From the sequence record OR699282.2: a stretch of DNA of 64,000 bases. One strand, written 5' to 3'. The notes beneath the pieces are model-generated. The model saw nothing but the letters and a program-made list of their open reading frames with translations, was not told where the DNA came from and made no database searches. How positions within the stretch are numbered: position 1 is the first letter of the stretch; every line of letters starts with the position of its first letter. Positions 1 through 64,000 of the stretch are shown here, one piece after another. The position numbers and the translations under genes were made by a program.

Positions 1-117
1 GTTCAATTCCTGGCTGAACTATATCGTCAAGTGCCGTTTATCATTAATGTACTAGAAGGTAATGATACATTATCACATGCAGATGTGATTAATTTTCTTG
101 GAAACTTGCATGTGTGA
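1..117 (+). CDS. 3' end of a hypothetical CDS entering the window
   Basis: Frame 1 is open from base 1 (VQFLAELYRQVPF...) to TGA at 115-117. Confidence 0.6.
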   Translation, partial: VQFLAELYRQVPFIINVLEGNDTLSHADVINFLGNLHV

Positions 118-397
118 TGAAATAAATCTTACAGGATATTTTTTACAAGAATCAATGATTAAATTTAGTGATAAATTTTCAGTACTGGATGGTATCGAAA
201 TGTGGCATGTCAAACCACTGTTCCACACTTTCAGTAAAGAGCACAAAATGTTATTGACTGAAGCGAGTAAATCAAATAACATATGTGAAATCAAAATTGG
301 TGTAAATGTCTATAAAGGGATGGTTATCTTTTTTGACAATAACAGCAACTACTTTTATATTGTTAAGGAGCATTACGTTGACAAATACAAATACTAA
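110..397 (+). CDS. hypothetical protein
   Basis: ORF track 98..397; ATG at 110 overlaps the upstream stop. Confidence 0.6.
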   Translation: MCDEINLTGYFLQESMIKFSDKFSVLDGIEMWHVKPLFHTFSKEHKMLLTEASKSNNICEIKIGVNVYKGMVIFFDNNSNYFYIVKEHYVDKYKY

Positions 398-992
398 TAC
401 ATACTTCCGTTATCTTCGCTTAGGTCTTTCCCTACGTCCGATCCGTGGAAAGTGCGATTCACTCGCTGACCTTGACTATGCATATGCATTACATCATGAA
501 GGTGTACAGTATGTATTGGGTGATTATGGTGAATTTGAAGAAACAAATGACAGTACTGGAATTAATGCTGGTGTAGAAAATCTTAACAACATTGCTAACA
601 GTTCTCGCCATGACATTGTGTTACAGATTCAAAACTTTATTGAGCAGCACACAGGTAAACGTGTTTGGTGCTATGTCGGTACTGATGCACAAATGTCAAT
701 TTCATTCGGTAACGATGAAGGATATGTTGCACAGCTTATTATGGATTTTGAATCTGAAGAGAAGTTTTTAGAATTCAAAGAAAAGATTATTCAGTCACTT
801 GTTGATATGGGTATCCCCGAAGATAAAATGCCAGAAGTTCAAAACATTGATGAATTTGTTTTGATTCCATCTGATGAGAAATATGATGCAATGTTTACTG
901 CCCTTAATATTCCAGGAGTTATTGTGGAGTACTTTGATGATGGTGATGATAGTATCTATATCGATCTAGATGACGATGACGACGATGAATAA
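378..992 (+). CDS. hypothetical acidic protein with poly-Asp tail
   Basis: AAGGAG at 365-370, 7 nt before an in-frame TTG at 378; ends DLDDDDDDE. Confidence 0.7.
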   Translation: MTNTNTNTYFRYLRLGLSLRPIRGKCDSLADLDYAYALHHEGVQYVLGDYGEFEETNDSTGINAGVENLNNIANSSRHDIVLQIQNFIEQHTGKRVWCYVGTDAQMSISFGNDEGYVAQLIMDFESEEKFLEFKEKIIQSLVDMGIPEDKMPEVQNIDEFVLIPSDEKYDAMFTALNIPGVIVEYFDDGDDSIYIDLDDDDDDE

Positions 993-998
993 TGTACA

Positions 999-1026
999 TA
1001 GCCCGACATAAGTTCGGGCTATTTTT
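999..1026 (+). terminator. intrinsic terminator
   Basis: TAGCCCGA-CATAAGT-TCGGGCTA followed by a T run. Confidence 0.8.
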
Positions 1027-1038
1027 GTAAGGGGATAT

Positions 1039-3184
1039 ATGAATTATAAAGTTCTACAATATACATACAGTGTTTTGTTTGATTTACATCACAATGGAAG
1101 ATATCTCAATACAATACGAGAAAACACATTCACTCATACTATCTGGATTAATCACTTAATAATGATACGTGAATATTTTGTTAATAGTGAGATAATCATT
1201 CGTGGTAAAAAACAGAAGATAGAACAAGTTAATAGTTTTGGTGGTAAATTAGTACTATCATTTATAGATAGTAATACTAATGAAAGATATAGTATAGATT
1301 TGGTGGACATATGAATTATAAAGATTTCCTACTAACATACAAGATTATTCGAGATTTAGCACACGACAATGATAGCCCTAGTCTAGAAGACACATGCACT
1401 GAAATGATTCATACAATTCGTGGTAAGATTAAAAAAAAATTCAGTACTGTTATTATTGGTGATGACCATGCAGAATTTTCTGATATAATCATTAGACGTG
1501 ATGGTAAAGTTGAGGTTCAGTACTACACTGATTTTGGATTTACCAGTATTCCGTTGGAGATATTCCCTTGGGATTAAATTTAAATGATATACAATTCACT
1601 TATAAGATCCTATATGATTTGTATGATGTATACCTTGTTAGTAACAAAATAGGTTCACATAACCCATACAAAGAACAACCATTTATTGATTTATATATTG
1701 AGTACTTAGATTCAGTAGGTGAATATATAAAAAAGAATTACAGTACTTTTATCGATGGAAATGATAAATTCGATTTCTATGGTGTGCAATCATATAATGG
1801 TATAATCCATGTTCAATTTCAGGAAATAACCGATAGGGGATTTATCGAGATTAAAGTTGTGAAGTTGGTGAATTTATAAGAGGTTACATATGTTATTAAA
1901 TGATATACAATTCACATACAAATTTTTGTATATCCAATACGCTACGGTTGATGCTGGAGAATATCTCTACAGTGAAATCTATCGTTCGGTATGGATAAAG
2001 TTTTTGGATGAATTACATGATTATTACCATGATTTGTGTATAGTTCGTGATAATAAAATATACAAATTCCGCGATATTGTTAGTCATAGCGGTAAGCTAC
2101 GATTGGAATTAAGTACTGATAGTGATGTTGATTGGATTGGTGTAAATTTACTGGAATTGAAGAATGAAAAACAACTTAAAGGAAATACAAGTATTTTATA
2201 AATTCTTATACTTATCATATGTAAAAGATGAGTACTATGAAAGTGTGTATTATTTTTTATGGCAACATTACCGTACTATAGTAAGAGATTTATATATAGG
2301 AAAATCTATCATATCCAATGGTGAAAAATGTATCTGTACGGATGTAGTTAGTTTTAATGGTTCTTTAACATTGTGTTTCAGATGCGATAATAATAGTGGA
2401 TCATTTTCATTAAACGTATATCAGTTAGAAGGAATAAATTTTGAATAAATGTCCATATTGTAACAGTACTCAATTAGCTCGTTTCCGTTTAGATTCAGAC
2501 TGGGCGACTGGTGCTGGTGATTTCTTCCCTATTAATGATGATGCAGAATACACCGAAGAACAGCACAAAGATTTTGATAAATCATGGCGACCTGACATTG
2601 AGTGCATTTATTGCCTTAATTGTGAGCGTGTTCATGACTAAAGCTGAACTAATAGTTCATACATATAAAATGATATCAAGTACTGAGTTATCATATAGTG
2701 CAGATAATCCAGTACTGGATTATTTTGTTGAATTATTGAAAGAGCATTATATTGGTAAATCACTGATTCTTAATAATATTAATTTCACGGTAAAGGATGT
2801 AGCACCTGGAAAAAACGTACTAATAGTATGTGTTACTTCATCTGATAACCCAGTATACCCAATATCAATAATTTTTGAGATATTAGGAGATTTATGAATA
2901 TCATTTTAATGCAGAAAACATATGCTATATTGGTGAAAGATTATTCCATTACTTTCGATTCACAAGAAAGTGCTCTACATAACCTATACAAAAACGTAAC
3001 ACAAGAATACAGAAATATGTTTTCTGACTTAGTAGTAGGAAGGTATTTCAGTACTAGAAAATACCCAAAACTTCAAATAGTTGATGTTTCTTTTTATTTC
3101 AATGGTCATATTACTATTCATAGTTTAGACCAAGATTCAACAACGTACTTAAACTTTTCATTTGATGAGGTAACATTTTTATGA
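1039..3184 (+). other. tandem array of 7 small (about 85-105 aa) paralogous CDS: 1039, 1311, 1568, 1890, 2164, 2634, 2894
   Basis: Shared N-terminal (Q/L)xTYKxL motif and (Y/V)(I/V)G(K/R) motif; overlapping or abutting start and stop codons. Confidence 0.7.
2441..2641 (+). CDS. small Zn-ribbon protein
   Basis: CPYC...CLNC cysteine pairs. Confidence 0.6.
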   Translation: MNKCPYCNSTQLARFRLDSDWATGAGDFFPINDDAEYTEEQHKDFDKSWRPDIECIYCLNCERVHD

Positions 3185-3357
3185 GAACAGTATTTTTTAT
3201 CTGGAGTCTTTTTTCATTGGCAGTACTGACAGTATGTGGGATTTGTTTCCTTTCATCAATTAATACTTGGTATATCAATTTACTATTTCCATTTGTCGGT
3301 GTTGGTTTAGGGTTTACTTTGCATAGTGTATGTAAGGATTACAATGAGAACAAATGA
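3181..3357 (+). CDS. small two-TM membrane protein (58 aa, not in ORF track)
   Basis: Manual translation MRTVFFIWSLFSLAVLTVCGICF...PFVGVGLGFTLHSVCKDYNENK*. Confidence 0.6.
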   Translation: MRTVFFIWSLFSLAVLTVCGICFLSSINTWYINLLFPFVGVGLGFTLHSVCKDYNENK

Positions 3358-3622
3358 AGTACTTATTGCTGAAACAATGAAGATGATTTACAATATCACG
3401 TCAGCACAGAATATGCCCTATCCAACTAAGTCTTTATTGAGGACTGTGTATCTGGGGATAGTACAGGAATACTACAAATCCAAGCACCGAAGCATTATTA
3501 GTGTTTATCGTGATTATGAAAGGATTCGTATTTTATTCTGGAACAAGAATCGAGTACGTTCTGAATGTGACCTAGTGGACTTTAAATTAGAGAATCTTTA
3601 TTGCTATAAACAGGGACAATAG
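3344..3622 (+). CDS. hypothetical protein
   Basis: AAGGA before ATG at 3344. Confidence 0.6.
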   Translation: MRTNEVLIAETMKMIYNITSAQNMPYPTKSLLRTVYLGIVQEYYKSKHRSIISVYRDYERIRILFWNKNRVRSECDLVDFKLENLYCYKQGQ

Positions 3623-3671
3623 TTTAATTCATGATATAATAATGGGTAAGGAACAATAATTAACACAAGGA

Positions 3672-4409: not shown

Positions 4410-4419
4410 GGAAACTTCT

Positions 4420-5048: not shown

Positions 5049-5055
5049 AACTAAA

Positions 5056-6320: not shown

Positions 6321-6321
6321 T

Positions 6322-7724: not shown

Positions 7725-7751
7725 TACTATCTAGCCTAAGCACAAGGAGAA

Positions 7752-8009: not shown

Positions 8010-8018
8010 GGAGTTCAT

Positions 8019-8544: not shown

Positions 8545-8547
8545 AGG

Positions 8548-9480: not shown

Positions 9481-9483
9481 TAC

Positions 9484-9516
9484 AAAAGGGATCATATATT
9501 GGTCCCTTTTTCTTTT
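9484..9516 (+). terminator. intrinsic terminator
   Basis: AAAAGGGATCA-TATAT-TGGTCCCTTTT followed by a T-rich tail. Confidence 0.75.
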
Positions 9517-22695: not shown

Positions 22696-22815
22696 TTGAC
22701 AAAACATCAGTGGTATGATATGATCTGTTATAAACTGTACACCTTAAGTTTTATTTTTAAAAATTTGAGTTAAGTACAGAAAAAGTTTGACTTAAGTGTT
22801 TAAGTACTATATTAT
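22696..22815 (+). promoter_or_regulatory. two tandem sigma70-type promoters
   Basis: TTGACA(22696)-N17-TATGAT and TTGACT(22787)-N17-TATTAT. Confidence 0.65.
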
Positions 22816-22850: not shown

Positions 22851-23459
22851 ATGAAAAGACTATGGCTTGAAGTGATACAAGCAGCGATGTTTCTATTGTT
22901 AATAAATTTTCCAGCCAGTGCTGGTATTGAAAGTAAAAATGTGATAAAGTATAATCCTGAAACCCGAAATGTATATTTCATATCAGATATTACAGATGGG
23001 TCGCTCAAGAGAATGATAGAGTTGTATGATAAAGAACACTATGATACCATCACAATTACATCTCCTGGTGGTGATTTTGATGCAGGTATTCGAATGGCAA
23101 ACTTTGTTAGAGACAATGGGATAAATTTAATTGTTTCTAGGTATTGCAATTCAGCATGTACTGTGGTATTCTTTAGTGTATCTCCCGAAAAGCGATATAT
23201 GACAAATCGCTCAGTACTGGGTCTTCATAACATTTCGATTAAAAGTAATGTTACTGATGGTGATAATTCATTTGTGTCTGTAAGACAGTTATCAACTTTT
23301 ACCGAAGAAATGGCAACAAAGGTAGGTTTCCTTTTTTCACTATATGCAGCAAATGGAATCCCACCAGAAGTACTATTTAGAGTTAGTCGTTCTCGTGGTG
23401 AAGATGTTGTAATATTAACAAAACCAGAACTGGTTTTTTACGGTTCAGTCAAACAATAA
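22851..23459 (+). CDS. exported ClpP/crotonase-fold protein
   Basis: Signal-peptide-like N-terminus (...FPASA); ITSPGG, CNSACT and LGLH motifs. Confidence 0.7.
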   Translation: MKRLWLEVIQAAMFLLLINFPASAGIESKNVIKYNPETRNVYFISDITDGSLKRMIELYDKEHYDTITITSPGGDFDAGIRMANFVRDNGINLIVSRYCNSACTVVFFSVSPEKRYMTNRSVLGLHNISIKSNVTDGDNSFVSVRQLSTFTEEMATKVGFLFSLYAANGIPPEVLFRVSRSRGEDVVILTKPELVFYGSVKQ

Positions 23460-24380: not shown

Positions 24381-24407
24381 AAGTACTAATATTATAAGAG
24401 AGAATAG

Positions 24408-28524: not shown

Positions 28525-30089
28525 ATGTTTTTTGACCAAACATTTACGTTGTATCACGATTCTGGTAAAGTTGAGATTATTGATAATCTGTTAGAGTACA
28601 TTGCGGAACATGACGGTATAGACCGTTTCCACAGTAAGATGAAATTCGATTTAGCTGAATTCAACAAAAAGAATCGTGAAACATTTTGGAAGAACCGTTT
28701 CTATTACGAAATGTTTCCAGAAAAGTTTGTGGGTTATTATCTTTGTACTGAAAAAGGATTACTTGTATCTCCTGATTTACTTATGGGTGAATACATGATA
28801 CTCTATAATGAGTACTGGGAACATAAACGTAAAGCTCGTGATACTGAATGGCGACATAAGCGTTCGTATATGTACAAACATAACCACTCACGATACAAGC
28901 GTCCTAAGACTCAACAAGAGCGTCGTATGGCTTGTGCAGTACTGAAGGATGAGGGGGAACCTGAAATACGTGGAAGACGTAAGATGCGTTCATTACCATC
29001 GTATTGGGACGATATCAGAACAAGACATAGTACTGGCTGGAAATACAGTACTAAACGTAAACATCAATACAAAGGGAGCTAATGCTCCCTAATTTTATAG
29101 GTGAACTTTATGAACAAAATTGACGTTACTGTAGTGATTGGTTATATTGAAATTGAACCGTGTGGCATTGATACCTTTATTGACACTCTTAATAAGTATC
29201 GTGCTGAATATAACGGTCCCATTAGTCTTTCACCAGACGGTGGTTACGGCGGGTTCGATGGATACAATGTAATTTGGACCAGAGAAGAAACTGACGAAGA
29301 ATATAATACACGAATTGAAGCTGAATCTAAAAGATGTGAAGAAATTGAACGTCAAGAAATGAAACACTTAATGAACAAGAAATCATTAAGTACCGAAGAG
29401 AAATCTAAACTGCTAAAATACATCAAGGATTACATGTAATGAAAAATGTAACTCAAGAAAAGATTCTGTACCTTGCAAAGTACAATGGTGGTTTCAATAT
29501 CATTAGCCGTGAGTACAGTGGTAATTTGGCTAAGTTGATTGACAGTTTGTTAGAATTTGATTTCATTAAATGGGAAACTAATGAACTTTGGTACGAATAT
29601 GCTGGTCAGAAATGGGAAAGTGATTATGATAATGCAATACATTCATACACTATCACCAAAGCAGGTGAAGTTCGATTAGCCATTATGCGTTGTGCATATA
29701 CTTACAAAAATCATAAAGGTGAAGAAAAACATATTCGCAGAAATGAAGAGCTATTACTTCTCATGGAAGCAGCAAAAGTTACAATGCATGATTTGTTCCA
29801 CCACCCACGTTGGTATGAAAATCTAACAAAAGCAGAGTACAAAGCTTTACGTTACATTGATGAACAAAACAACAACCCAGTTGAAGTTGATGATGTTAGT
29901 GATGACGAACTAAGCCTCAAAAATGTATTTGAAAGTACCAGTACTGAAAGTATTACAGACATTTCTGTACAGATGGCACTAAAAGCAATGGAACTTTTCA
30001 AGACACAATATGAAGGACACAGTGCTGAAGAAGTAGAGCGTGAGTTCATTACACGCGTACAGATTGCATTGTTCCAATCGAAAAAGTAG
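28525..30089 (+). other. three hypothetical CDS (28525-29082, 29101-29439, 29439-30089)
   Basis: ORF track; AAGGAG RBS for the first; TTGACA at 28440. Confidence 0.7.
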
Positions 30090-30102
30090 GATGATATGAA
30101 AT

Positions 30103-30284
30103 ATGAACATCCGTGATGGGTTATCATATAAAGAAGCAGGTAAAGATGGTGTCAAAGTCTTTGCATTTGTGCACTTGACATGTTCGCTTTGTAATGCGAT
30201 AATATAAGTTCAGAAGAGATGGAACGTGAGTTCCTTACTTACATGAATGTTAAACTAGCCAAATGGCGTAAATCAATTCAATAG
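30103..30284 (+). pseudogene. decayed duplicate of the C-terminal domain of 29439-30089
   Basis: ALDMFAL*CDNISSEEMEREF parallels ALKAMELF...HSAEEVEREF, with an in-frame TAA at 30192 and a probable frameshift. Confidence 0.5.
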
Positions 30285-30293
30285 GTATTTTAA

Positions 30294-31265
30294 ATGAAAA
30301 CTAAAATTATTTCTGAACAAAAAATTGGCAATACTACAGTACTGAATCTTGAAGTTCAAGGTCTTAGTAATGTTCGTTCTCTTACGGTTTGTACTCAGAG
30401 AGATGATTTGACTGATTTCTATAGCTCAGAATACATGTCAGAAGAACCTTGGGATATGGGATGGTTGGACGGTAGTAGTTATATCAGTTCACGTTATAGT
30501 TTTGGTTCTCATGAAAATATTGAACAATTAAAAAATGAGTATATTAAACTCAGTGATACTATTGAAATGAAAGAAGAAGATTGTGTAGAACTTTTCATTT
30601 TTGAATTCGATGCCGGAAATGGTAATTCATTACTAGTAAGTAATATTGAAGAACATTTAATGTATCATGAAATTGAAGATGTAGATTTTGAAAGTATTAA
30701 AAATGTTGTTCATATGGTTGGTGGTAGTATTACTGATGATTCAGATATCGGTCATAATATTTCACTTTGCTTAATTTCTCATCCAAAAACTCGTGGTTTT
30801 AAAGTTCCACAAGATGAAACTTACGTGTCTGAAACTGCTGATGAAGGAATTTATCCTTGGAATGATTATGTAGAATACTATGGTCATTTCTGTTCTGATA
30901 CAAAAGAACTGAAAAAAGGCGAACAATATTTTGATATGTTCCGTGCTGCACAGCGTTTAGTACTGAATAATACTGAACTATTTCCTGATCGCGGCGAAGA
31001 AAATATGATTGATATTATCTTCAAGAACTATGATTATGTACAGAACATTCCTGATAATGTACATTTGGAATATGTTCACGGTTCTTCAAACAAATTCTAT
31101 AATATTGAATTGAATGCTCCAGTGTGTGAAGTAATTATTGAGTACGGTGCTATTGGTAAAACCAGTACTACTGATGGTGAAGAATTCGAAACTATTGAAG
31201 AAGCACGTAAGTTCTTCGAGAAGAAAGTAATTTCCAAAATTAAAAGTGGTTATAGCCCAAAATGA
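30294..31265 (+). CDS. acidic protein with C-terminal WGR domain
   Basis: SNKFYNIE...EYGAIG...EEARKFFEKKVISKIKSGY. Confidence 0.75.
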   Translation: MKTKIISEQKIGNTTVLNLEVQGLSNVRSLTVCTQRDDLTDFYSSEYMSEEPWDMGWLDGSSYISSRYSFGSHENIEQLKNEYIKLSDTIEMKEEDCVELFIFEFDAGNGNSLLVSNIEEHLMYHEIEDVDFESIKNVVHMVGGSITDDSDIGHNISLCLISHPKTRGFKVPQDETYVSETADEGIYPWNDYVEYYGHFCSDTKELKKGEQYFDMFRAAQRLVLNNTELFPDRGEENMIDIIFKNYDYVQNIPDNVHLEYVHGSSNKFYNIELNAPVCEVIIEYGAIGKTSTTDGEEFETIEEARKFFEKKVISKIKSGYSPK

Positions 31266-31642
31266 AAATCACACGCTTTGGTAAAACCTTTGAACTAAAC
31301 ATTGTTTCTGTTTATAAAAAAGGAAAATCAGGAAAGTTAAGCACTGATAATATTAGATTTGTTATTAGTGATTATTATGATATGTTTAATCAGGCATTTG
31401 AAGAAAATAAATTTGGTTTGATTTTATGTAAACCACAAAAACCGGAATTAGGTATTTTGGATTTAAGAACTGATAAGTCTGATTTTATTGGTAATCTTGA
31501 TATTATTGAATTTAAAGTTGATATATCAAAAGAACATTTTAGAGTTAAAAACTATAATTATTACAAAGTTGATATTAATTCTATCGAAGTACAAAACGTA
31601 CTTGATGAACTTATCAGTAATAATTCGTGTTTTACTAAATGA
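31262..31642 (+). CDS. hypothetical protein
   Basis: ORF track. Confidence 0.6.
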   Translation: MKITRFGKTFELNIVSVYKKGKSGKLSTDNIRFVISDYYDMFNQAFEENKFGLILCKPQKPELGILDLRTDKSDFIGNLDIIEFKVDISKEHFRVKNYNYYKVDINSIEVQNVLDELISNNSCFTK

Positions 31643-31653
31643 GAAAAAATATC

Positions 31654-31887
31654 ATGAAAAATATATTCATTACATTAACAATATTTGTATCCATTATTCT
31701 CTGTGGTTGTGCTCCTAAAGTTGATGAGATGGATGCTGAAATCATCCGTCAAGGTTTAACAAAACTAAATCACCAAGGAACACTATACGCATGTCATACT
31801 ATGCGTCATGGACAAGATCTTAATCTCATGTGCAGGAAGATTGTGAATCGCAAACGTCTTAATACTGTTCCGAAGGATGCACAATGA
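31654..31887 (+). CDS. lipoprotein
   Basis: Signal peptide with lipobox LCG-C. Confidence 0.7.
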   Translation: MKNIFITLTIFVSIILCGCAPKVDEMDAEIIRQGLTKLNHQGTLYACHTMRHGQDLNLMCRKIVNRKRLNTVPKDAQ

Positions 31888-32054
31888 AAGAAGTAATTGG
31901 CTACAAATGTAAAAATTGTGGCAAAGATAAGGGTAAGCATTCAGTACAAGGAATGGCTTGCCCGAATCCAGGTCGTGGTAATTTCAGAGGGTTCAGTACT
32001 GAAAAGTCTTACGAGCCGGATCATACCAAACCTGTAATGGGTTATAAATTATGA
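31884..32054 (+). CDS. small Cys/His protein (56 aa, not in ORF track)
   Basis: Manual translation MKEVIGYKCKNCGKDKGKH...CPNP...; AAGGA RBS. Confidence 0.55.
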   Translation: MKEVIGYKCKNCGKDKGKHSVQGMACPNPGRGNFRGFSTEKSYEPDHTKPVMGYKL

Positions 32055-33070
32055 GTGATTATGTAGCATTTCTTCATCGCTTTGGAGAAGCTAAAGAAAA
32101 ACATATTATCCGTATGCCATTATATGGTGAAAAAGACTGGTACAAAAGTACTATCAGTGTAGGTGCATTTCGTGACCGTGAAGCTGGATTCTTTCTGGGT
32201 AAGAAACATGAACGAGAGGTACTTTGCTCACTGTGGCGTTTGGATGAATGGGATAGTGAGAACGTAAGAACTGCTGAATCAATGCTGGCTATTGTTGGTA
32301 TTGCGAACTATCAGCATCCATATGACCTATTACCTACATTTGAACATGCTTCTTTGTTTGACTTTTACAAAGCAGTAGGGTATGATTATAAAAAGAAACG
32401 TTACATTTAATATCAGTACTGTCATAATGGCAGTACTTTTTAATTGGAGATTACTATGACTACATCGGAAAAGTACTGGTGGATTTTGGCTCATCCCAAA
32501 TTCATAAACAAAGATATGGTTCCAGCTAGGATTGATATAGAACCTCATGATGTGTGTCCAATGACAAATCGAATTGAAGATTTCAAAGCATTGAATACAA
32601 AGACTCAATTTTGGGTAGAATTTCTTTCACCAATGTATATTGAGCAAGACGACGAATGGGTACAAGCACATGATTATCAATTGGATTGTGGTGGTGATAC
32701 GTATGAAGAGGCGATTGAAAAATTATACAAAAATGTGCTAAACACATATGGTAATTACACCCAACAAGAAGCAGATAACACATTTAATAAGATCCATGCA
32801 TTCAAATCTACTCCATCAATTTTTAATCCCACTAAAACTGTTTGGGAGGAACGACACAGTTGGAGTTCATGTGTAATCGATGAAGAAACCAAAGAAAAAA
32901 TCATCGATGATATAAAAAATTTAAAAAATACGATAGAAGCCTTGCGTGAATTCATAATGTCTTGTACAATAGAACAACAGAAAGAGGCAAAGATACATTT
33001 GGAGAGTGAAGAATGTAAACTTTGGGTTCTAGAGAAATCTATTGAAAAGGGTATAGACTTAGACTTATGA
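32051..33070 (+). other. two hypothetical CDS (32051-32410, about 32456-33070)
   Basis: ORF track. Confidence 0.7.
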
Positions 33071-33435
33071 ATAGTAAATTGGAGAAACTAATCGAAGAAT
33101 TACGCCAGATGCCACCTATTGAACAAGTAGGAAATTACAAACGGTATCGTGTTATTGCTCGTGCACTTGATAAAAAAGGTAGAGTACTGGCAACTCGCAC
33201 AAATTCTTATACACAGACTCACCCAGTACAGAAGGGTTTCGCCATTCGTGCTGGGCGACCGCAAGGTGAGTTTCTTCATGCTGAAATTTCATGTTTACTG
33301 GCTGCTCGTACTGATGTTCATACTTTACTGATTGCACGGATAAGTAAAGATGGAATTCCTGTTCCGGCTAAACCATGTGAAATTTGCTCATTAGCAATAA
33401 AAGAATATGGGGTGAAAGAGATTATCCACACATGA
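33067..33435 (+). CDS. second cytidine-deaminase-superfamily protein
   Basis: HAEISC and KPCEIC Zn motifs. Confidence 0.8.
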   Translation: MNSKLEKLIEELRQMPPIEQVGNYKRYRVIARALDKKGRVLATRTNSYTQTHPVQKGFAIRAGRPQGEFLHAEISCLLAARTDVHTLLIARISKDGIPVPAKPCEICSLAIKEYGVKEIIHT

Positions 33436-33663
33436 AAATTGAAAGATATGCTAAGCATACTGTTGGGTGTGTAAATGATATATTCTATTATTATATTTTT
33501 GCACCTGAACTACGTTTTCAAATCACAACATACAATGATGGCAGATTTAAAGATACAAACTTCCTCATAACCGACTTAGCAAAGTATGCGAATACAGAAC
33601 ATTTTAATCATTTAGTATTTGTGTACTGTATACCAAACCCAAATAAAAAGTAGGAGATTAAAA

Positions 33664-34023
33664 ATGGCTAAAACAATTTCTTTAAAAAATGAAAATGTAG
33701 GACAACGCAAAGATGGTTTCTTTGGTTTTTCTTGGACAACATTATTCTTTGGACCGTTCCCTGCATTGTTTCGTGGTGACTTTATTACGTTCATCGGTGC
33801 ATTTGTAATTTACTTCATCCTCAACGCAGTGTCATTTTGGATTGTGGGTACAATTGCAATGGTTGTATGGGCATTTCTTTATAATAAGTACTACACCGTG
33901 AATCTCATCAAGAATGGGTATAAATTCAATGGCACACATGAAGAAAATGCTGAAGCTGCAATGGCTTTGCAAATTGATTTGAATAAAAACAACACAGTTG
34001 ATAAAAATAAAGATCCTGAATAA
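33664..34023 (+). CDS. membrane protein, HrgC/DUF2628-like
   Basis: GFSWTTLFFGPFPALFRGD, two TM segments, and YNKYY..NLIKNGY. Confidence 0.65.
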   Translation: MAKTISLKNENVGQRKDGFFGFSWTTLFFGPFPALFRGDFITFIGAFVIYFILNAVSFWIVGTIAMVVWAFLYNKYYTVNLIKNGYKFNGTHEENAEAAMALQIDLNKNNTVDKNKDPE

Positions 34024-34839
34024 ATGGAAAAATACGATATAATTTACGATTATTATGGTAAGGCTTATATGAAGTGTGGGCGTTATGTTGAACTCTCTAA
34101 TAGAGAATCAATAGATCCCCACACTCTTATAACAATTCATAATTCGTACTATAAAAAAGTTACAATAGCTAATTTTGCAACATACGTAAATAATCCTTTA
34201 TTTCCTTACATTATTCAGTACTACTGTAGAGTTATCAAATAAGGTAAAAAGAAATGTTAGCTGATGAATTTATGTCACTAAGTATCAAGATATTTGATAT
34301 ACTAGGTGATGAAACAGATTTCAATCTAAGCGACAAAGATATTCCATTGGAAGATGGTGGATACTTTTTTGCGATTGGAACTACGTATAATCTGGATCTT
34401 TCAAAGCCTATCAGTGATGATAGTGATTATAATGCAACAACATATTTTGATTTCCAGCTTGATGGACATAAAGAGCGTTTACTAACGTACAGACGTAAAG
34501 GTAGTTTCAATAGAACCGAGATTACAATAATGGATTTTGAAAAACGCATTGAACTAGCTAAGAAACATCCATTCATCAGTACTCATACATTTAATAGACT
34601 AATCGATCTATTAGATAATTATCCATATACAATCCGAGGGTCGTTACGTTTAAATGCAGAATGAAATCTTCAAAAAAGAATACGATGGTGAAAGTCTCTA
34701 TGATATTCAAAGAGACGTACATGAAGCATTCGATTCAAGATTTAACCCATTAGCTGAACAAATCCCACAAGATGAGTTTGGTTTTCAGGAAGGCACTTTC
34801 ACAGTGACTATTACATGGAGTCCAGATGAGACTAGCTAA
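34024..34839 (+). other. three small hypothetical CDS (34024, 34254, 34654)
   Basis: ORF track; terminator at 34942-34963. Confidence 0.6.
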
Positions 34840-34998
34840 ACTTGTAATAGGTTGTAGTGCACTTGCTGCATATATGCTTTTTTCCGCACCAACCAATGTA
34901 TTACTGTTAATTTGGGCAGTTGTTATATTAGCAGTACTTTAAAGCACCCTAGTGGTGCTTTTTCTATTTGTGCAAATAAAAACCAATGTGACTTTTCC

Positions 34999-35040
34999 TT
35001 GATATAGGTCAAGAGAAATAACCTGTTCTGACGCTATAAT
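34999..35040 (+). promoter_or_regulatory. FNR-dependent class II promoter for nrdD
   Basis: TTGAT-ATAG-GTCAA (1 mismatch to the FNR consensus) centred at 35005.5; TATAAT at 35035-35040, giving -41.5 geometry; no good -35. Confidence 0.7.
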
Positions 35041-35101
35041 GTTGTCTGGTGATATTAAATATCTTCACCCCCAGATGATTTCAAAATACAAGGAATGTAC
35101 A

Positions 35102-36907
35102 ATGCAATTAGATAAATTATATACTGACGTAACGAATTTCCTCAATCAGAGCAATACTGATCTTACCAACGAAAATGCGAACAAAGATGCGAAATGCGTC
35201 AATACACACAGGGATTTACTTGCAGGTATCCTATCTAAGCATTATTCACAAGATGTTATTCCAAATGAGCTAATGCAGTGGCATAATGATGGTTATGGTC
35301 ATATTCATGATTTAGACTACTATATCAGCCCATTAACCAACTGTTGCTTAGTTAACTACCCAGATATGCTAAAAAATGGATTTACCATTGGTTGTGCCAA
35401 AATTGAAGAACCAAAGAGTTTTAGTGTAGCATGTACAGTACTGACACAAATTGTTCAGGCTGTTGCTAGTTCCCAGTATGGTGGACAATCGTTGGCTCAT
35501 ATTGACGTTGGTCTTGAACCTTACGTTCAAAAGTCATGGGATAAGCTGTTAGAAAAACAAAAGAAATATAATCTAAGTGATGAATTCATTGAAGAAGAAC
35601 TACGAAAAGAAGTATACGATGGCTGTCAAACATTACTTTACCAAACTAATTCAATGATTAGTACTAATGGTCAAGCTGCATTTATTTCTCTTAGTTTAGG
35701 TCTTAATACTTCTAAATTTGGTAAATTAATTACTGAACAGTACTTAAAAGTTCATGAGAATGGTTTAGGTAAAGATAAGATTACTCCAGTGTTTCCTAAA
35801 GTTATTTTCTTTCTACAAGATGGTATAAACATGAATGCAAATGATAGCAATTATGACCTCAAACAGTTAGCTATGCGTTGTGCATCAAAAAGAATCTATC
35901 CAGATTTTGTTTCAGTACCATTAAATCACAAAGTGACTGGAAGTAGTAGTACTGCTGTAACACCGATGGGCTGTCGTTCATTCTTAGGAAAATGGGAAGA
36001 TTCAAATGGAAATGAACAATATAACGGTCGTTTCAATTTAGGCGTAGTTTCTATCAATTTACCTCTAATTGCTCTTGAGAGTGCTTCTGATGGAGAGTTT
36101 TTTGATAAGATAGACGAGCACATGAATATTGCATATCGTGCTCAGATGAACCGTGTGGAGCGTTTAAAAGGCACTAAAGCGAAGCAGAATCCAATTTTGT
36201 TCATGGAAGGTGCATTAGCACGTTTAGGTGCAGAAGAAACCATTGACAAGCTATTTTACAATGGTTATGCTAGTATTAGTATTGGTTATGTTGGTCTTGT
36301 TGAATGTTCAGAAATCCTCACTGGTTCTATCAGTAAGGAGTTTTGTATGTCAGTACTGAATTATATGAAAGTAAAATGTGATGAGTTCAAAAAAGAAAGT
36401 AATATTGCTTTTAGTCTATATGGAACTCCAGCAGAGTCGCTTTGTTATAAATTTGCACGTTGCATTGAAGCAAAATATCCTTCAGTACTAAAACGTGATT
36501 ACATCACAAATTCCTTCCATCAACCAGTATGGGTAGAAAGTTCTCCATTTGATAAATGGAGTTATGAAGAAGGGTTTGCTTACCTAAGTAACGGTGGAAA
36601 CATCAGTTATGTTGAATCTCCAAACTTAGCAAACAACATTCAAGCACTTGAAACATTAGTTAACTATGCGTACACTAAGATACCATATTTTGGTATTAAC
36701 CAACCAGTTGACCATTGTTATGAATGTGGCTTCCAGGGTGAGTTCAGTGTAGATAAACATGGTTTCCACTGTCCTGTATGTGATAATCGTAATGAGAAGA
36801 CAATCTCAGTGATTCGTCGTGTTTCTGGGTACTTGGGTAATCCTTCTTCGCGTGGCTTCAATAAAGGCAAGCAACAAGAGTGTTGTGAGCGTATTCAGCA
36901 CAAATAA
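35102..36907 (+). CDS. nrdD: anaerobic (class III) ribonucleoside-triphosphate reductase, no ATP cone
   Basis: HIHDLD, NCCL, PMGCRS, PAE, CxxC..CxxC and glycyl-radical RRVSGYLG; AAGGA RBS before ATG at 35102. Confidence 0.96.
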   Translation: MQLDKLYTDVTNFLNQSNTDLTNENANKDAKCVNTHRDLLAGILSKHYSQDVIPNELMQWHNDGYGHIHDLDYYISPLTNCCLVNYPDMLKNGFTIGCAKIEEPKSFSVACTVLTQIVQAVASSQYGGQSLAHIDVGLEPYVQKSWDKLLEKQKKYNLSDEFIEEELRKEVYDGCQTLLYQTNSMISTNGQAAFISLSLGLNTSKFGKLITEQYLKVHENGLGKDKITPVFPKVIFFLQDGINMNANDSNYDLKQLAMRCASKRIYPDFVSVPLNHKVTGSSSTAVTPMGCRSFLGKWEDSNGNEQYNGRFNLGVVSINLPLIALESASDGEFFDKIDEHMNIAYRAQMNRVERLKGTKAKQNPILFMEGALARLGAEETIDKLFYNGYASISIGYVGLVECSEILTGSISKEFCMSVLNYMKVKCDEFKKESNIAFSLYGTPAESLCYKFARCIEAKYPSVLKRDYITNSFHQPVWVESSPFDKWSYEEGFAYLSNGGNISYVESPNLANNIQALETLVNYAYTKIPYFGINQPVDHCYECGFQGEFSVDKHGFHCPVCDNRNEKTISVIRRVSGYLGNPSSRGFNKGKQQECCERIQHK

Positions 36908-36915
36908 GGTAAATT

Positions 36916-37248
36916 ATGGATTTAAAGCCAATTGTGGTTAACAAATACAAAGAACCGTATGATGTGTATATTGGACGTGGGTCTAAATGGGGAAACCCAT
37001 TTACCCATATTAAAGATAAACAAACCAAAGCCGAGTTCATTGTTAGTACAAGAGAAGAATCAATTGAAAAATTCAGAGAATACATTATTGAACGTATTTC
37101 TTGTGGAGAAGTTAAGATTGATGAATTACTTGAACTCGCAGGGAAACGCCTTGGTTGTTTCTGTAAACCAAAATCATGTCACGGCGATGTTCTTGTCGAA
37201 ATAGTGAGTGCAATATTAGATGAATTACCAGACGATAATCAAGGATGA
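36916..37248 (+). CDS. DUF4326 family protein
   Basis: VYIGRGSKWGNPF and LGCFCKPKSCHGDVL. Confidence 0.85.
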   Translation: MDLKPIVVNKYKEPYDVYIGRGSKWGNPFTHIKDKQTKAEFIVSTREESIEKFREYIIERISCGEVKIDELLELAGKRLGCFCKPKSCHGDVLVEIVSAILDELPDDNQG

Positions 37249-53289: not shown

Positions 53290-53804
53290 AGAAAATGACA
53301 ACGGACATTGAAAAATGGACACTGAGAACCTACTTCTCTTGAAAATGTAAAGGATAGATGAGCTTTACCGTTGTAGCGAACAGCAGAAGAAACCTGTTAG
53401 AGTACTGGCATTCAAACAAACACGATGTAAGACCACGAATCACGGCGACACGGCTGTATAAAGAACTCCGATAAGCATACAGAGAGTTCCTAGATAGATG
53501 TATAAGGTTCGCACCTTACCAGATTTGCTAAGGGAGTTCAAGAATAGCGGACGCAATTTTTACAAGAAAGTTGCGTCCAAAATTTGAGAACAAGTACTAC
53601 TTTGATCGAATAGAGTTAGTACTGAGTGCTGTTGATGAAAAGACCAGCGACCGTTGCATATGACTGCGATAGAGAGAAACCGAGCAACCCGCTTTCGCTC
53701 TCTAAATTTTGGTACAAGAAAGATCCGTCCAAAATTTGAGAAATTCGCAATTCGATAATATCCGATGCCATCATCGTCAAGAGAGACTTAATTGTCTCTT
53801 TTTT
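53290..53804 (+). ncRNA. candidate structured non-coding RNA of about 515 nt, family unknown
   Basis: No credible ORF; raised GC; at least 7 hairpins; bounded by a promoter and a terminator (AGAGAC-TTAATT-GTCTCT plus T run, 53782-53804). Confidence 0.6.
53561..53742 (+). repeat. two 30-nt direct repeats (53561-53590, 53713-53742), 28/30 identical
   Basis: TACAAGAAAG(TTG/ATC)CGTCCAAAATTTGAGAA. Confidence 0.95.
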
Positions 53805-54405: not shown

Positions 54406-54846
54406 ATGGAAGATATTAATGATTTACGACACGTAATGGACTTTATCGGAAGTACTGAAGAAGATAATTCGTATGATGAAGTACTATTAACTTTTATTGA
54501 AAATAGTTTGTTTTTAAGTTCTGCTGCACATAACTGGCACTTACAATGTCATTTTTATACAAAGCATTTACAATTAGATGAACTATATAAAGAATTACCA
54601 GAATATGTAGACGCATTTGTTGAAGGTATCATGAATAATCGTGGTGCTTTACAAGTTGGAACTGGTAATAGTTATCGTTTTACACCAATTGAAGATTGTG
54701 TACCAATTCTTGAAGAATATGTAGAGCAATGTAGAGCAATTCATGATATGCTTGAAGAATCAGGTGATTACGGCAGTGTAAACACATTAGAAGATATTAT
54801 GAGTTTTGTTGAAGGAACACTTTACAAACTTAAAGTTTTACAATAA
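54406..54846 (+). CDS. ferritin/Dps-like four-helix protein (DUF5856-like)
   Basis: AHNWHLQ..Y.KHLQLDELY......VDAFVEG pattern. Confidence 0.7.
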   Translation: MEDINDLRHVMDFIGSTEEDNSYDEVLLTFIENSLFLSSAAHNWHLQCHFYTKHLQLDELYKELPEYVDAFVEGIMNNRGALQVGTGNSYRFTPIEDCVPILEEYVEQCRAIHDMLEESGDYGSVNTLEDIMSFVEGTLYKLKVLQ

Positions 54847-54894
54847 AATATATGGAGAGTCATTGTGACTCTCCTTTTCTTTTGGACAAATAAA

Positions 54895-58164: not shown

Positions 58165-58183
58165 ATGTATTTGACCTCACTAT

Positions 58184-59774: not shown

Positions 59775-59781
59775 GTAAAAT

Positions 59782-60192: not shown

Positions 60193-60360
60193 TGTGGTTT
60201 TTATGGTAAATATATCTTGTAATAAAATAAAAATATGCTATACTACTTAAACATTTGAAAAGAACGTTTTTGTACTGTAGAAAGTCCGATGAGGCTTTTG
60301 CAAATGGCCTCTTTGCCATCTTTGTGATTGCCCATCTTAACAATCAACAAAGGAGGCGTT

Positions 60361-61287
60361 TTGAAACAAGCGAAAAAAGCACTGAAAACTAAGACTACTT
60401 ATGGTGTTCTAGTTTGCACAGTACTTGTCGCTGCGATTGGATTTTATGGTTTTTCTCAAAATGATCGTGTATCATCATCGGACGAAAGTCAGGTACACAA
60501 TTTAAAACCACAAGTTACGCAAATTCAAAAGCAGGAATTACCAAAGGTAGAAATATCAAAGGATGTTCCACGCGGCGAGAAGCATTATACGGTTCAACCT
60601 GGTGATAGTTATTATTCTATTGCTAAAAAGTTTAAACCTAAAAATGTACAACTTGAAGAGTATGTTATTTTGTTGAAAAATATCAATTTAAATGCTACTC
60701 TTCATACTTCTCAGGGTATCTTTATCCCAACAAAAGAGGATTTGAAGAACGTATTGTTACCAGATGTGACTGTACTGTTTGATTATAATGATCCAGAAAT
60801 TGTCAATCACATCAAAGAAGCTGAAGGTTCAATTGAATTTCAGTCCAAGAACAAACGCCGTTTACTTGGTGGGAAAGTCGGAGTTCCTTTCCACAATTCT
60901 AAATTTCATCCTTACAAGGACATGAAAGGTAATTATACAATAGGTTATGGGCATTATTTGGGTAGAAAAGAATCTGATGCGATTAAGTACAGAAACGGTA
61001 TTACCAAAGCTCAAGCCAATAAACTTTTAATGCAAGATATGAAAAGAACATATAATGACTTTTTATTATTGATGCAGAAAAAAGAAGCAGTAAATCTGAC
61101 CAAAGAACAACAACGTATTCTTTATGAAATGTCCTATACAATGGGTGTTGATAAATTAGCAACGTTTAATAAACTTTGGAAAAGTGTGAAAAATGATAAC
61201 CCTAAGAAATTTAAAAAAGAAATTATGAATTCCTTATGGTATCGTCAAGTTACAAACCGAGCAGATTTGTTGTTAAGTTCACTCTAA
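60361..61287 (+). CDS. TM + LysM + T4-lysozyme-like muramidase
   Basis: YTVQPGDSYYSIAKK (LysM); AEG...YKDMKGNYTIGYGH and WYRQVTNRA parallel T4 lysozyme; AGGAGG RBS before TTG. Confidence 0.88.
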   Translation: MKQAKKALKTKTTYGVLVCTVLVAAIGFYGFSQNDRVSSSDESQVHNLKPQVTQIQKQELPKVEISKDVPRGEKHYTVQPGDSYYSIAKKFKPKNVQLEEYVILLKNINLNATLHTSQGIFIPTKEDLKNVLLPDVTVLFDYNDPEIVNHIKEAEGSIEFQSKNKRRLLGGKVGVPFHNSKFHPYKDMKGNYTIGYGHYLGRKESDAIKYRNGITKAQANKLLMQDMKRTYNDFLLLMQKKEAVNLTKEQQRILYEMSYTMGVDKLATFNKLWKSVKNDNPKKFKKEIMNSLWYRQVTNRADLLLSSL

Positions 61288-61303
61288 AAAAGGAAGGTGA
61301 AGT

Positions 61304-61636
61304 ATGCTAAATCTAAATATTCAAGGCAACGTTGATATCACTCCAGCAATCCAAGATGCTATTTACAATGAAGCAAAAAGTCTGGATAAGTACCGTACTT
61401 CTTCAGTACTAGACATTGGTGTTCATGTTAAGAAAGAGCATAAAACTCAATATGCTGTAACTTTAACTGCTGGTAGTAAATCAGTAACTGCTGATGATGC
61501 TGATTTGTATAAAGCAATTGTTGAATCTTTTGATAAGATGGAAACTGTATTCAGTAAAGACAAAAGCATTAAATTACACCGCCGAAACCATCCAGAACAC
61601 CCAGTTCTTGATGATTTGACAGAAAACGAAGAGTAA
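61304..61636 (+). CDS. hpf: ribosome hibernation factor HPF/RaiA-like
   Basis: LNIQGNVDITPAIQDAI...DLYKAIVESFDKME matches the S30AE/HPF pattern; terminator at 61648-61674. Confidence 0.8.
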   Translation: MLNLNIQGNVDITPAIQDAIYNEAKSLDKYRTSSVLDIGVHVKKEHKTQYAVTLTAGSKSVTADDADLYKAIVESFDKMETVFSKDKSIKLHRRNHPEHPVLDDLTENEE

Positions 61637-61691
61637 TATATATACTAAAGGGACAGATTAATTCTGTCCCTTTTCTTATGGAGTTTTAATT

Positions 61692-63230
61692 ATGAATTAT
61701 TCCTGGATGGAAATTGTAAAATCTCTAATATCAACACATGATATGGACTTACCTGAACACCTAGTTATTAATAGATGGTACTATCCATATCCAGATAACC
61801 GTTGTGTTGGGATTGGATTTTTTATTAATGAAAAATCTCAATATATTGGATTAATTGAAGATTATACAAAAACCAACATTGCGTTCTCTATTGAGTTGAA
61901 TGTAGATCACATAAAATACTACACCAATAAAATGGACGAAGACGATGGTGATGTTATAATTCCAGCAGAAATAGACGAAGCTTCATTTTTTCAGTTATCA
62001 TTAATTCATGATGTATCTGATATTACTTATGATAATGTGAAAGACCTTTTTATATTGTACAATAAACTGTATAATTACTTTTTGTAATGGAGATAAATTT
62101 ATGGAATATACAATATGTATAGTTATATGTATCATATCCTTACTAGTCGGGGTTGGTGTGATGATTTATTGTGATGCAGAACCCAGTACTGAAGTAGGAA
62201 CAACAATAACACTTAAACCTGGTGTTAAAGTTAATGATAATTATTGCTATGATCCAAACACAAACCGTTATGAGATTTGTTTATGAAAACATTCAACATT
62301 GTTCATATAATTGAACCGATTGCAGAACATATTAAAAACATAAGTAAGAACGAGTCAGGTTTTTTCTTCGATTTAGACAAACTTCATCGCACCAATGTAT
62401 CTAGTTTTAATCGTACTAAGAGACTTTACATCCGTATACACAACCTATGGTACAGTGACGATACGTTGATGATAGATATCACGGTTGATGAAGACATAAC
62501 ATTAAGATACATTGACGATTTTAAATCAGATGATATTCGTTCTGGCTCATTACCAATTGATGCTTCATATGAAGAATATATGCAATATCAGTTCATTGAT
62601 GACACATTTGGATTTGACTTTGATCTATATAATAGTATAATGAACGTATACCATATATACGAAAGGAATTTGAATGGACATTCGTAAAATACCAAATTTC
62701 CACAATACATTAAGGTTCTTTTCTGAACAAGAAATCAGTACTGAAATACGAGGCATAATTTCGTATAATCAATATAGAGTACTAACCACTAATAAATTTC
62801 AGGGTACTGTACGTATAAAAATACGAAACTCGTTAGTAGAGAATGATGAATTATTAATTACACTTAGAAAAAGTAAGATAGAATTAACATACGCAATTTT
62901 CGATACTACATATGAGTTGATGTGGAACACACTGTCAAAAAAAGAAGGTTCATTGCCAGTTGTTGATAATGGTCCTGAAACACTTGATCAGTACATGTTC
63001 ATTGATGATACATTTAGTATTGACTATCCATCATTTCAGTGTATACTAGATATACACGAAAAATATTACGACCGTCTACGTGACAGATTAATTTAATTGG
63101 AGGCATTATGATTGCTATATTAGAAGAAGATTGGGGTGTTTCCGAGCAAGGCACTGATGAATATGAATACCCAGAATATAAGCCCAAAGGCTTCTGGGAA
63201 CGTTTGCGTGATTGGTTGATGGGGGAATAA
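61692..63230 (+). other. hypothetical CDS (61692, 62101, 62283, 62674, small 63108-63230)
   Basis: 62283 and 62674 share QYxFIDDTF; 61692 has EASFFQ. Confidence 0.65.
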
Positions 63231-63231
63231 T

Positions 63232-64000
63232 ATGAAAAAGTATTTGGTTGGTGGCTACGTCCGTGACCGTTTAATGGGTCTTCTTGCAAAAGACAAAGAT
63301 TATGTCATTGTCGGAGCAACTGAATCTGATATTAAGTACTTGCAAAGTATTGGCTATAAGCAAGTAGGTAAGGATTTCCCTGTATATCTAAGTCCAGAAG
63401 GTAATGAACACGCATTAGCCCGTACTGAGCGTAAAACTGGTACTGGATATGGTGGCTTTGAAGTGGATACAAAAGGCGTAACACTCGAACAAGATTTGTA
63501 TCGCCGTGACCTAACAATAAATGCAATTTCGTATGATCCAGTACTACAAATTCATATCGATCCATACGGTGGTAAAGCTGATATCAAGAACAAGGTACTA
63601 CGTCATGTTTCTGACCATTTTAAAGAAGATCCATTACGTGTGTTACGTCTTGCTCGATTTGCTACTCGTTATTCTGACTTTACTATCCATGAAAGCACTG
63701 AGGAACTCGCTATTGGAATGGTCAATAGTGGTGAGTTAAATCATCTTGTTCCTGACCGTGTTTTTGTGGAATTCGAAAAAGCATTTTCCGAAGAAAAGCC
63801 TGCAAAGTTCCTTAAGACGCTAAGTAAATTTGGTTATTACGAAAAGGTGTTTAATACATCTTTGACCAAAAAGAATTTAGACCTTATTGATTATATTGCA
63901 GAGAACTGTACGGATGTATATAAACCATATTTTCTGTGGTCTATTCTTCTTGAAAATGAAGAAGTAAATAATGATTCAGTACTTAACGGTGCTATTAAAG
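63232..64000 (+). CDS. cca: tRNA nucleotidyltransferase (CCA-adding enzyme), 3'-truncated by the window; absent from the ORF track
   Basis: Manual translation YLVGGYVRD..DKDYVIVG, GKDFPV, ALARTERK, DLYRRDLTINA, EDPLRVLRLARF. Confidence 0.95.
   Translation, partial: MKKYLVGGYVRDRLMGLLAKDKDYVIVGATESDIKYLQSIGYKQVGKDFPVYLSPEGNEHALARTERKTGTGYGGFEVDTKGVTLEQDLYRRDLTINAISYDPVLQIHIDPYGGKADIKNKVLRHVSDHFKEDPLRVLRLARFATRYSDFTIHESTEELAIGMVNSGELNHLVPDRVFVEFEKAFSEEKPAKFLKTLSKFGYYEKVFNTSLTKKNLDLIDYIAENCTDVYKPYFLWSILLENEEVNNDSVLNGAIK

Follow-up and report, generated by a model that had tools for sequence, protein, structure and literature searches.

Why should a single 6-bp palindrome, AGTACT, recur about once every 362 bp along the DNA of a large phage? 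The question is raised by bases 62001 to 126000 of OR699282.2, a 64-kb stretch (referred to here as the window) of Escherichia phage BAU.Micro_ELP-22 (ELP-22; Asteriusvirus), a jumbo myovirus of the PBECO4/121Q group with a genome of 373,488 bp. Nearly all genes of the window lie on the plus strand, and 96% of it is coding; positions below are those of the window unless they are given as record positions. AGTACT occurs 177 times in the window and is its top-ranking hexamer, the runner-up being AAAGAA with 127 copies. A preliminary description, made from the sequence alone, had arrived at about 175 copies, distributed as 37, 32, 25, 29, and 20 per successive 10 kb and 34 in the final 14 kb. Exact counting returned identical segment tallies, and the figure of about 22 copies expected from base composition agrees with the 21.5 computed here. 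The whole ELP-22 genome, counted beside the window, contains 1060 copies where 126 are expected, and there too no hexamer is more frequent. The enrichment is confirmed to be real and strong.

No null model accounted for the excess. Dinucleotide-preserving shuffles of the window predicted 17.2 copies (maximum of 27 in 100 shuffles), and Markov models of order 2 and order 3 predicted 30 and 57, respectively. The coding sequences of the window contain 168 copies, compared with 33.4 in a pooled synonymous-codon shuffle that keeps the proteins and the codon usage (z = 24), 41.9 when the synonymous shuffle is confined to each gene (z = 22), and 23 after permutation of codon order. A shuffle of the Katz-Burge type, which keeps protein, codon usage, and dinucleotides, raised the expectation to 71, with a maximum of 94 (z = 14.7); the enrichment thus persists in the dicodon comparison under which, according to the preliminary description, it might have disappeared. 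All three reading frames are used (79, 33, and 58 sites), each at 4 to 8 times the shuffle expectation, and intergenic DNA, at 2.4 sites per kb, matches coding DNA, at 2.8 per kb, so that the independence from reading frame and the intergenic occurrence reported earlier both hold. Even the conserved structural and replication genes carry 58 copies, compared with 18.1 in the synonymous shuffle (z = 11.5).

The enrichment follows the phage clade. The relatives sampled were CMSTMSU and TH47 (Asteriusvirus), RaK2 and OU509535 (Alcyoneusvirus), GAP32, CBB, and XbC2, whose listed host is Xanthomonas (Mimasvirus), Eneladusvirus fHe-Yen9-04, Salmonella phage Munch, and one IMG/VR contig; a search of IMG/VR for further relatives yielded two loci only. 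AGTACT is enriched 5.1- to 8.7-fold in every Rak2-like lineage of this sample. The comparison DNA consisted of Pseudomonas phage PA5oct, the phi92-like coliphage PD211, Stenotrophomonas phage CM1, staphylococcal phage 80, and a 50-kb sample of Escherichia coli K-12. PA5oct, which is related, has one copy against 8.4 expected, and PD211, which is not, has one against 13.8 (a ratio of 0.1 in both cases), whereas CM1, phage 80, and the E. coli sample have ratios of 0.7 to 0.9. The density in ELP-22 is about 12 times that of the E. coli sample. Because the trait tracks the phage clade, a phage-encoded reader of the site is favored over a host-encoded one. The hosts of PD211 and PA5oct may select against AGTACT, in which case its abundance in the Rak2-like phages would be all the more striking. 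The literature searched contained no description of AGTACT together with Rak2-like phages, in agreement with the statement in the preliminary description that it knew of no such system in these phages.

Comparison of related genomes locates the selection in the DNA itself. In the 45 kb of ELP-22 compared with CMSTMSU, where nucleotide identity is 84%, AGTACT survives intact at 70% of its sites; the figure for all same-frame hexamers is 41%. At third codon positions whose first two bases are conserved, 90.5% are kept inside AGTACT and 69% elsewhere (P = 7e-10) when the same codons (AGT, ACT, GTA, and TAC) are compared inside and outside the sites, which supplies the excess of synonymous conservation that DNA-level selection predicts. 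A cross-genus alignment of 39 to 44 orthologous genes (about 65% amino acid and 69% nucleotide identity) shows that 25 to 41% of ELP-22 sites coincide in the alignment with a site of RaK2, GAP32, fHe-Yen9-04, or Munch, compared with 16 to 18% for any hexamer; about 0.15 shared sites would be expected under independent placement. Although most sites are unshared between genera, each genome has 52 to 75 of them in the aligned region. This turnover of sites with the number kept implies that individual sites are selected and that their density is selected more strongly. AGTACT sites are under purifying selection on DNA itself. The proposal of DNA-level selection in the preliminary description is therefore sustained, since the excess survives codon-aware and dicodon null models, the synonymous positions are conserved, the flanks are independent of frame, and the spacing is even (the latter two are detailed below). 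The density gradient, the placement in early promoters, the 12-bp palindrome, the clade-wide conservation, and a block of the variant AGTACA had been overlooked.

AGTACT is the core of an extended 12-bp palindrome, ttCAGTACTGaa. The tetranucleotide GTAC is about 2-fold enriched overall in the window, with 43% of its copies lying within AGTACT, and none of the other NGTACN words approaches AGTACT in abundance. The base preceding the core (position −1) is C at 43 to 49% of sites and G at 9%, and the base following it (+1) is G at 47%; farther out, the flanks are T rich upstream and A rich downstream, in a reverse-complement symmetric pattern. The preference for C at −1 and G at +1 is seen in each reading frame, against codon-position backgrounds of 12 to 29%. 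The form CAGTACTG accounts for 40 of the 177 window sites and occurs 235 times in the genome against 3.7 expected, TCAGTACTGA occurs 60 times against 0.4, and TTCAGTACTGAA occurs 24 times against 0.04. As a share of AGTACT sites, CAGTACTG makes up 22 to 27% in Asteriusvirus and the RaK2-type phages, 15 to 18% in GAP32 and XbC2, and 3 to 7% in CBB, fHe-Yen9-04, Munch, and the IMG/VR contig, while the enrichment of the core is constant across lineages. The symmetry of the flanks points to a reader of duplex DNA, probably a protein with two-fold symmetry and a footprint of about 12 bp.

The sites are distributed along the genome in a gradient. They are densest in both copies of the approximately 21-kb terminal repeat (64 to 68 per 10 kb, about 20 times expectation), intermediate in the window (20 to 42 per 10 kb), and sparsest in the structural and replication region (11 to 19 per 10 kb). 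The terminal repeat itself is direct (record positions 1 to 21300 and 352200 to 373488) and contains very small genes, each with its own sigma-70-like promoter. The spacing check suggested in the preliminary description showed that sites are more regular than chance: the gaps in the window have a coefficient of variation (CV) of 0.81, compared with 0.99 in simulations (P = 0.002), and the largest gap is 1469 bp, compared with 2058 bp simulated. In four of five genome regions, the CV is 0.79 to 0.88 against 0.99 simulated, with the largest gaps falling under the 5th percentile; the exception is the region from 21 to 62 kb, which is the home of the AGTACA block. AGTACT is uniform along genes, without dependence on gene length, and a metagene profile revealed no clustering at gene starts or ends, the only departure being the dip that is expected around the ribosome-binding site and the start codon.

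A minority of the sites are built into promoters. The small early genes of the terminal repeat have sigma-70-type promoters that carry AGTACT at two fixed places, the first overlapping the upstream edge of the −35 hexamer (aaaAGTACTTGCAA) and the second abutting the −10 hexamer (AGTACTGTATAAT). Both are often present, 20 to 22 bp apart, and AGTACT pair distances across the whole genome peak at 20 to 22 bp. Among matches to TTGNNN-N16-18-TATAAT in the genome, 67 of 139 carry AGTACT in or beside the hexamers. Promoter-linked copies nonetheless make up less than a tenth of all sites; more than 90% are intragenic and distant from promoters. The window offers the following promoter and intergenic examples, the two promoters being read from the sequence.

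22787-22815, plus strand: sigma-70-like promoter, with TTGACT at 22787-22792, a 17-nt spacer, and TATTAT at 22810-22815.
32401-32437, plus strand: promoter-like sequence, with TTACAT at 32401-32406, a 16-nt spacer, and CATAAT at 32423-32428.
24382-24387, no strand assigned: AGTACT within an AT-rich intergenic stretch (aaaAGTACTaatattataag) that separates the HslV-like peptidase gene from the gene after it.
53593-53598 and 53618-53623, no strand assigned: intergenic AGTACT pair, 25 bp apart, in an unannotated gap.

In the first of these, AGTACT at 22803-22808 occupies the 3′ portion of the spacer, and a protease gene starts downstream at 22851; the promoter-spacer copy mentioned in the preliminary description is thus real. 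The second holds two copies 17 bp apart upstream of a gene starting at 32456, one (32415-32420) ending 2 nt before the −10 hexamer and the other (32432-32437) near the predicted start. A tblastn search of the phage for SlmA or a TetR-like protein as the cognate regulator gave no match.

One region of the genome replaces the palindrome with a one-strand variant. Over 8.3 kb outside the window (record positions 28726 to 37000), AGTACT is absent and AGTACA occurs 43 times, on the sense strand only. These copies are divided among the frames as 15, 14, and 13, stand in unrelated contexts, and show the same preferences for C at −1 and G at +1 as AGTACT. The block is unique within the ELP-22 genome, and Pfam searches with ten of its proteins gave no match. 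Its sites are kept one by one in EC22.5-2 (59 of 64) and in TH47 (50 of 56, at 87.5% nucleotide identity). Such conservation in two independent genomes rejects a sequencing or base-calling artifact and implies that the block is real and under selection. The block shows that something tells the full palindrome from a variant with AGTAC on one strand only. Outside it, AGTACA is enriched about 2.2-fold on the sense strand and 1.3- to 1.7-fold on the antisense strand. Separately, tandem paralogous genes of about 70 codons at record positions 21.5 to 27 kb contain a conserved gcTGTACTg and lack AGTACT for 4.8 kb. A polarity set by divergent forks or primase, with TGTACT at 22 to 25 kb and AGTACA at 29 to 37 kb, was considered and rejected, because the TGTACT copies belong to a paralogous gene family and are not independent.

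Two methyltransferases were considered as partners of the site. ELP22_0179 is a small Dam-family N6-adenine methyltransferase (Pfam PF05869, E = 6e-32). The Dam-family gene and a cytidylyltransferase-like gene are annotated together in Asteriusvirus, RaK2, Munch-type, and EJP2 records, and in the ELP-22 record the pair lies just outside the window.

Record 60770-61821: methyltransferase gene and cytidylyltransferase-like gene, ending about 0.2 kb upstream of the window, with the methyltransferase 0.7 to 1.2 kb upstream.

Orthologues of ELP22_0179 were found in every enriched genus sampled. By host, the matching records fall to Escherichia (33), Klebsiella (10), Erwinia (8), Salmonella (6), and Yersinia (4), with two each for Xanthomonas, Serratia, Pectobacterium, and Cronobacter; no Pseudomonas phage was among the 85 matches at E ≤ 1e-32, even though the terminase is shared by 11 Pseudomonas phage records. 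A modification site, one of the functions put forward in the preliminary description, is plausible because this methyltransferase is co-distributed with the enrichment. Its nearest homologue outside the clade, in staphylococcal phage 80, gives no clue to its specificity, and a sequence search of the PDB gave no match. The second enzyme, ELP22_0494, is a C5-cytosine methyltransferase (PF00145). It appears to be of the CpG type and is unlikely to be the AGTACT partner, given that bisulfite data for RaK2 point to methylation of CpG (PMC3622015) and that a 50%-identical homologue occurs in the AGTACT-poor phi92-like phage.

The closest known analogue of AGTACT, judged by its pattern, is the highly iterated palindrome (HIP) of cyanobacteria, where a high-frequency palindrome is accompanied by a methyltransferase specific for it (Elhai 2015, PMC4390886). 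HIP1 (GCGATCGC) and the alternate HIPs are likewise frame-independent palindromes present genome-wide at many times expectation, with conserved sites, a quasi-regular distribution, an association with orphan methyltransferases, and a debated function (PMC4390886, PMC13756078). AGTACT shares with them its frequency in all frames and in noncoding DNA, its conservation, and its over-dispersed spacing. It differs in being viral, 6 bp long, and AT rich, whereas the HIPs are cellular, 8 bp long, and GC rich; its link to a methyltransferase consists of phyletic co-distribution only; and it is built into early promoters and has a one-strand AGTACA variant block.

We therefore propose, with roughly even confidence, that AGTACT is a HIP-like iterated recognition site in duplex DNA, read by a symmetric protein that the phage encodes. 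The proposal draws together the observed enrichment, selection on DNA, symmetry, spacing, promoter placement, and co-distribution with the clade and the methyltransferase. Selection on the DNA holds AGTACT, the core of ttCAGTACTGaa, at about one per 150 to 600 bp throughout the Rak2-like genomes, and a phage-encoded protein with two-fold symmetry would most likely read it, so that phage DNA would bear a mark about 12 times as dense as in the E. coli sample. The leading candidate for the writer or reader is the Dam-family protein ELP22_0179, which may form with AGTACT a pair of orphan methyltransferase and iterated palindrome like that of the cyanobacterial HIPs. At the sigma-70-type early promoters, the paired sites at −35 and −10 could act as an operator for the same recognition event; for example, early transcription might be shut off as the reader accumulates or as methylation changes after replication.

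Several points weigh against this proposal, the first being that no reader protein was found. The co-distribution of the methyltransferase is confounded with phylogeny and amounts effectively to one gain and one contrast. The specificity of ELP22_0179 is not readable from its sequence, and the Dam family is best known for GATC. Its nearest relatives outside the clade, in staphylococcal phages (43 to 46% identity), are found without the AGTACT anomaly, and the CpG methylation reported for RaK2 says nothing about AGTACT. A type II methyltransferase would not usually show preferences in the flanks beyond a 6-bp core, and the variation of the CAGTACTG share by lineage, from 3 to 27%, may mean that separate factors act on the core and the flanks. 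Finally, the AGTACA block is not predicted by a simple symmetric-dimer model and hints at a strand-specific component.

Recognition of AGTACT could also be one half of a self/host code. The tetranucleotide GCGC has no copies in the 373 kb of ELP-22, where 320 are expected, and none in any Rak2-like sample; it is present in PA5oct, the phi92-like phage, and E. coli (341 per 50 kb, about 7 per kb). Among the phages sampled, absence of GCGC accompanies enrichment of AGTACT. A phage-encoded GCGC-specific nuclease or extreme restriction avoidance could produce this absence. Other palindromes are avoided as well: about 25 GC-rich hexamer palindromes (GGATCC, CTGCAG, GAGCTC, GTCGAC, CCATGG, and others) have no copies in the window, and GATC, CTAG, GGCC, and CCGG are depleted 1.7- to 2.1-fold genome-wide. 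Restriction-site avoidance for these palindromes thus coexists with AGTACT, whose bias has the opposite sign. We tentatively suggest, as a possibility that is less probable than its converse, a two-part code in which AGTACT is a positive mark and the absence of GCGC a negative one. Phage enzymes would then act on, protect, or silence phage DNA and attack host DNA, and the one-strand AGTACA block would represent the code in a locally polar form. On this view, a virus would for the first time be seen to possess a highly iterated palindrome system, and one open to experiment in E. coli.

A pure modification mark of the HIP type, maintained by repair drive and with neither a separate binding protein nor a regulatory role, is an unlikely explanation. 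On this account, a phage methyltransferase would methylate AGTACT, and methylation-dependent mismatch or strand-discrimination repair would both need dense sites and create or maintain them. The iterated palindrome, conserved sites, and quasi-regular spacing are what a HIP-like system would leave (PMC4390886, PMC13756078), an orphan methyltransferase is co-distributed, and strand-directed repair would presumably benefit a genome of 373 kb that has its own replication genes. More than 1000 sites of the ScaI/Eco255I type would also plausibly need modifying, and an unrelated coliphage avoids the site. However, repair that converts near matches should deplete them, as a very-short-patch-type bias of the kind seen at CCWGG in E. 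coli would do, and that candidate was rejected on this ground. The one-off neighbors of AGTACT in the window are not depleted, with the single exception of AGGACT (6 copies against 11 expected); the deamination-type words AGTATT (37 against 37) and AATACT (46 against 36) are at or above expectation. Differences at orthologous sites fall mainly at positions 2 (11 cases), 4 (9), and 6 (6), with two at position 1, in a small sample in which one genome is of lower quality, and the bias toward the first and last nucleotides that is known for HIP1 was not found in them. No MutS, MutL, or MutH homologues are annotated in the ELP-22 genome, and such a mark leaves the placement at promoter hexamers and the 12-bp symmetry unexplained.

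It is more doubtful that AGTAC is a strand-specific signal on single-stranded DNA or RNA, the palindrome being the cheapest way to place it on both strands. A primase, a Chi-like helicase-nuclease, or an RNA-level factor might be the reader. Such a reader would fit the AGTACA block, which is one stranded, uses all frames, and is conserved in EC22.5-2 and TH47, as well as the sense-strand excess of AGTACA elsewhere and the fall in AGTACT density from early to late regions, as if density were tied to transcript class. It provides no reason for flanks that are reverse-complement symmetric out to 12 bp, or for the G at +1 that persists as AGTACAG inside the block, and the equality of intergenic and coding densities also speaks against it. 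The sense bias of AGTACA could be a codon effect, as TGT (Cys) is rare, and the stretch of opposite polarity at 22 to 25 kb is a paralogous family. The over-represented polar words that mark self DNA, namely, Chi, the FtsK-orienting polar sequences (KOPS), and the DNA uptake sequences, are asymmetric and orientation biased. They are like AGTACT in being short words over-represented in coding DNA and kept by selection or drive, and in that one DNA is far denser in the word than foreign DNA, as ELP-22 is relative to E. coli; they differ in that AGTACT is palindromic with symmetric flanks and shows polarity only in the AGTACA block.

Improbable, too, is the action site of some other phage enzyme with two-fold symmetry, such as a T4-type topoisomerase II, by which a large genome might be untangled more easily. 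ELP-22 encodes topoisomerase II subunits, a cut of the form A/GTAC/T would match the 4-nt stagger typical of type II enzymes, with a central 4-bp GTAC between symmetric flanks, and coverage is even, without long gaps. To our knowledge, however, no type II topoisomerase has so strict a 6-bp specificity, and neither the promoter placement nor the maximum in the early region is explained.

The proposal of a functional genome-wide mark in the preliminary description had included a decoy for a host protein. The part of it concerning genome-wide selection at the DNA level stands, but the decoy is not supported for the nucleoid-occlusion factor SlmA, the one E. coli protein known to recognize an AGTACT core. 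Titration or activation of SlmA, with a block to cell division, is very improbable and largely refuted. The central AGTACT of the SlmA site, GTGAGTACTCAC, is identical to the phage core, and that site is palindromic and read as duplex DNA, as the phage site would be (PMC3020112); enriched phages nearly all have enterobacterial listed hosts, and the Pseudomonas relative lacks the trait. SlmA requires G1, T2, a purine at position 3, A4, and G5 in its 12-bp palindromic site (PMC3020112), and these flanks are absent or avoided in the phage. There, GTRAGTACTYAC has no matches, one good half-flank is found at 11 to 12 of the 1060 sites, which is below the prediction from flank composition, and the preferred base at −1 is C, a pyrimidine. 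The roughly 50 SlmA sites of E. coli compare with 1060 copies of AGTACT, XbC2, with Xanthomonas as its listed host, keeps the enrichment, and ELP-22 lacks a homologue of SlmA. The absence of any function, with AGTACT a by-product of codon or amino acid usage, of repeats, or of a sequencing artifact, has a negligible probability: although protein sequences carry part of the excess (23 copies under permutation and 33 to 42 under synonymous shuffling) and some sites lie in duplicated promoters and the duplicated terminal repeat, it is refuted by the failure of all coding nulls (z = 11 to 24), equal enrichment of noncoding DNA, excess synonymous conservation, and the presence of the trait in independently sequenced genomes of at least five genera.

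For the preferred reading, in which a phage-encoded protein recognizes AGTACT in duplex DNA, the promoter-borne sites also have parallels. SPO1 TF1 binds in early promoters of the terminal repeat, and some promoters are sensitive to methylation of the Dam or SeqA type. The likeness lies in paired symmetric AGTACT sites on the same helix face (20 to 22 bp apart) that reach into the edges of the −35 and −10 hexamers of early promoters, which are concentrated in the terminal repeat; the difference lies in the more than 90% of sites that are intragenic and in the lack of a cognate regulator among the proteins found. HIPs were recognized in cyanobacteria three decades ago, and their function is still not settled; a signal of this kind in a lytic phage of E. 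coli K-12 would bring the question within reach of standard tools. AGTACT takes up about 1% of all bases, and coding sequence accommodates it. The site may explain the shut-off of early transcription. In practical terms, abundance of AGTACT together with absence of GCGC is a simple diagnostic signature of the clade for metagenomes.

Two further features were observed. The gene at 54406-54846 (plus strand) is annotated as a starvation-inducible transcriptional regulator and has a strong match to DUF5856 and a weak Ferritin-like match, which suggests a Dps-like product that is possibly DNA binding or DNA compacting. Elsewhere, the words CACCAG, ACCAGT, TCACCA, and ACCACC are locally very abundant at record positions 148000 to 160000 and 336000 to 344000 and in the homologous regions of relatives, with ACCAGT reaching 44 copies in 8 kb. 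CACCAG is complementary to the Chi core CTGGTG, but the excess of these words probably comes from coding repeats of the tail-fiber and RCC1-like kinds and from codon usage. The full Chi sequence is present in 25 copies on the plus strand and 14 on the minus strand of the ELP-22 genome.

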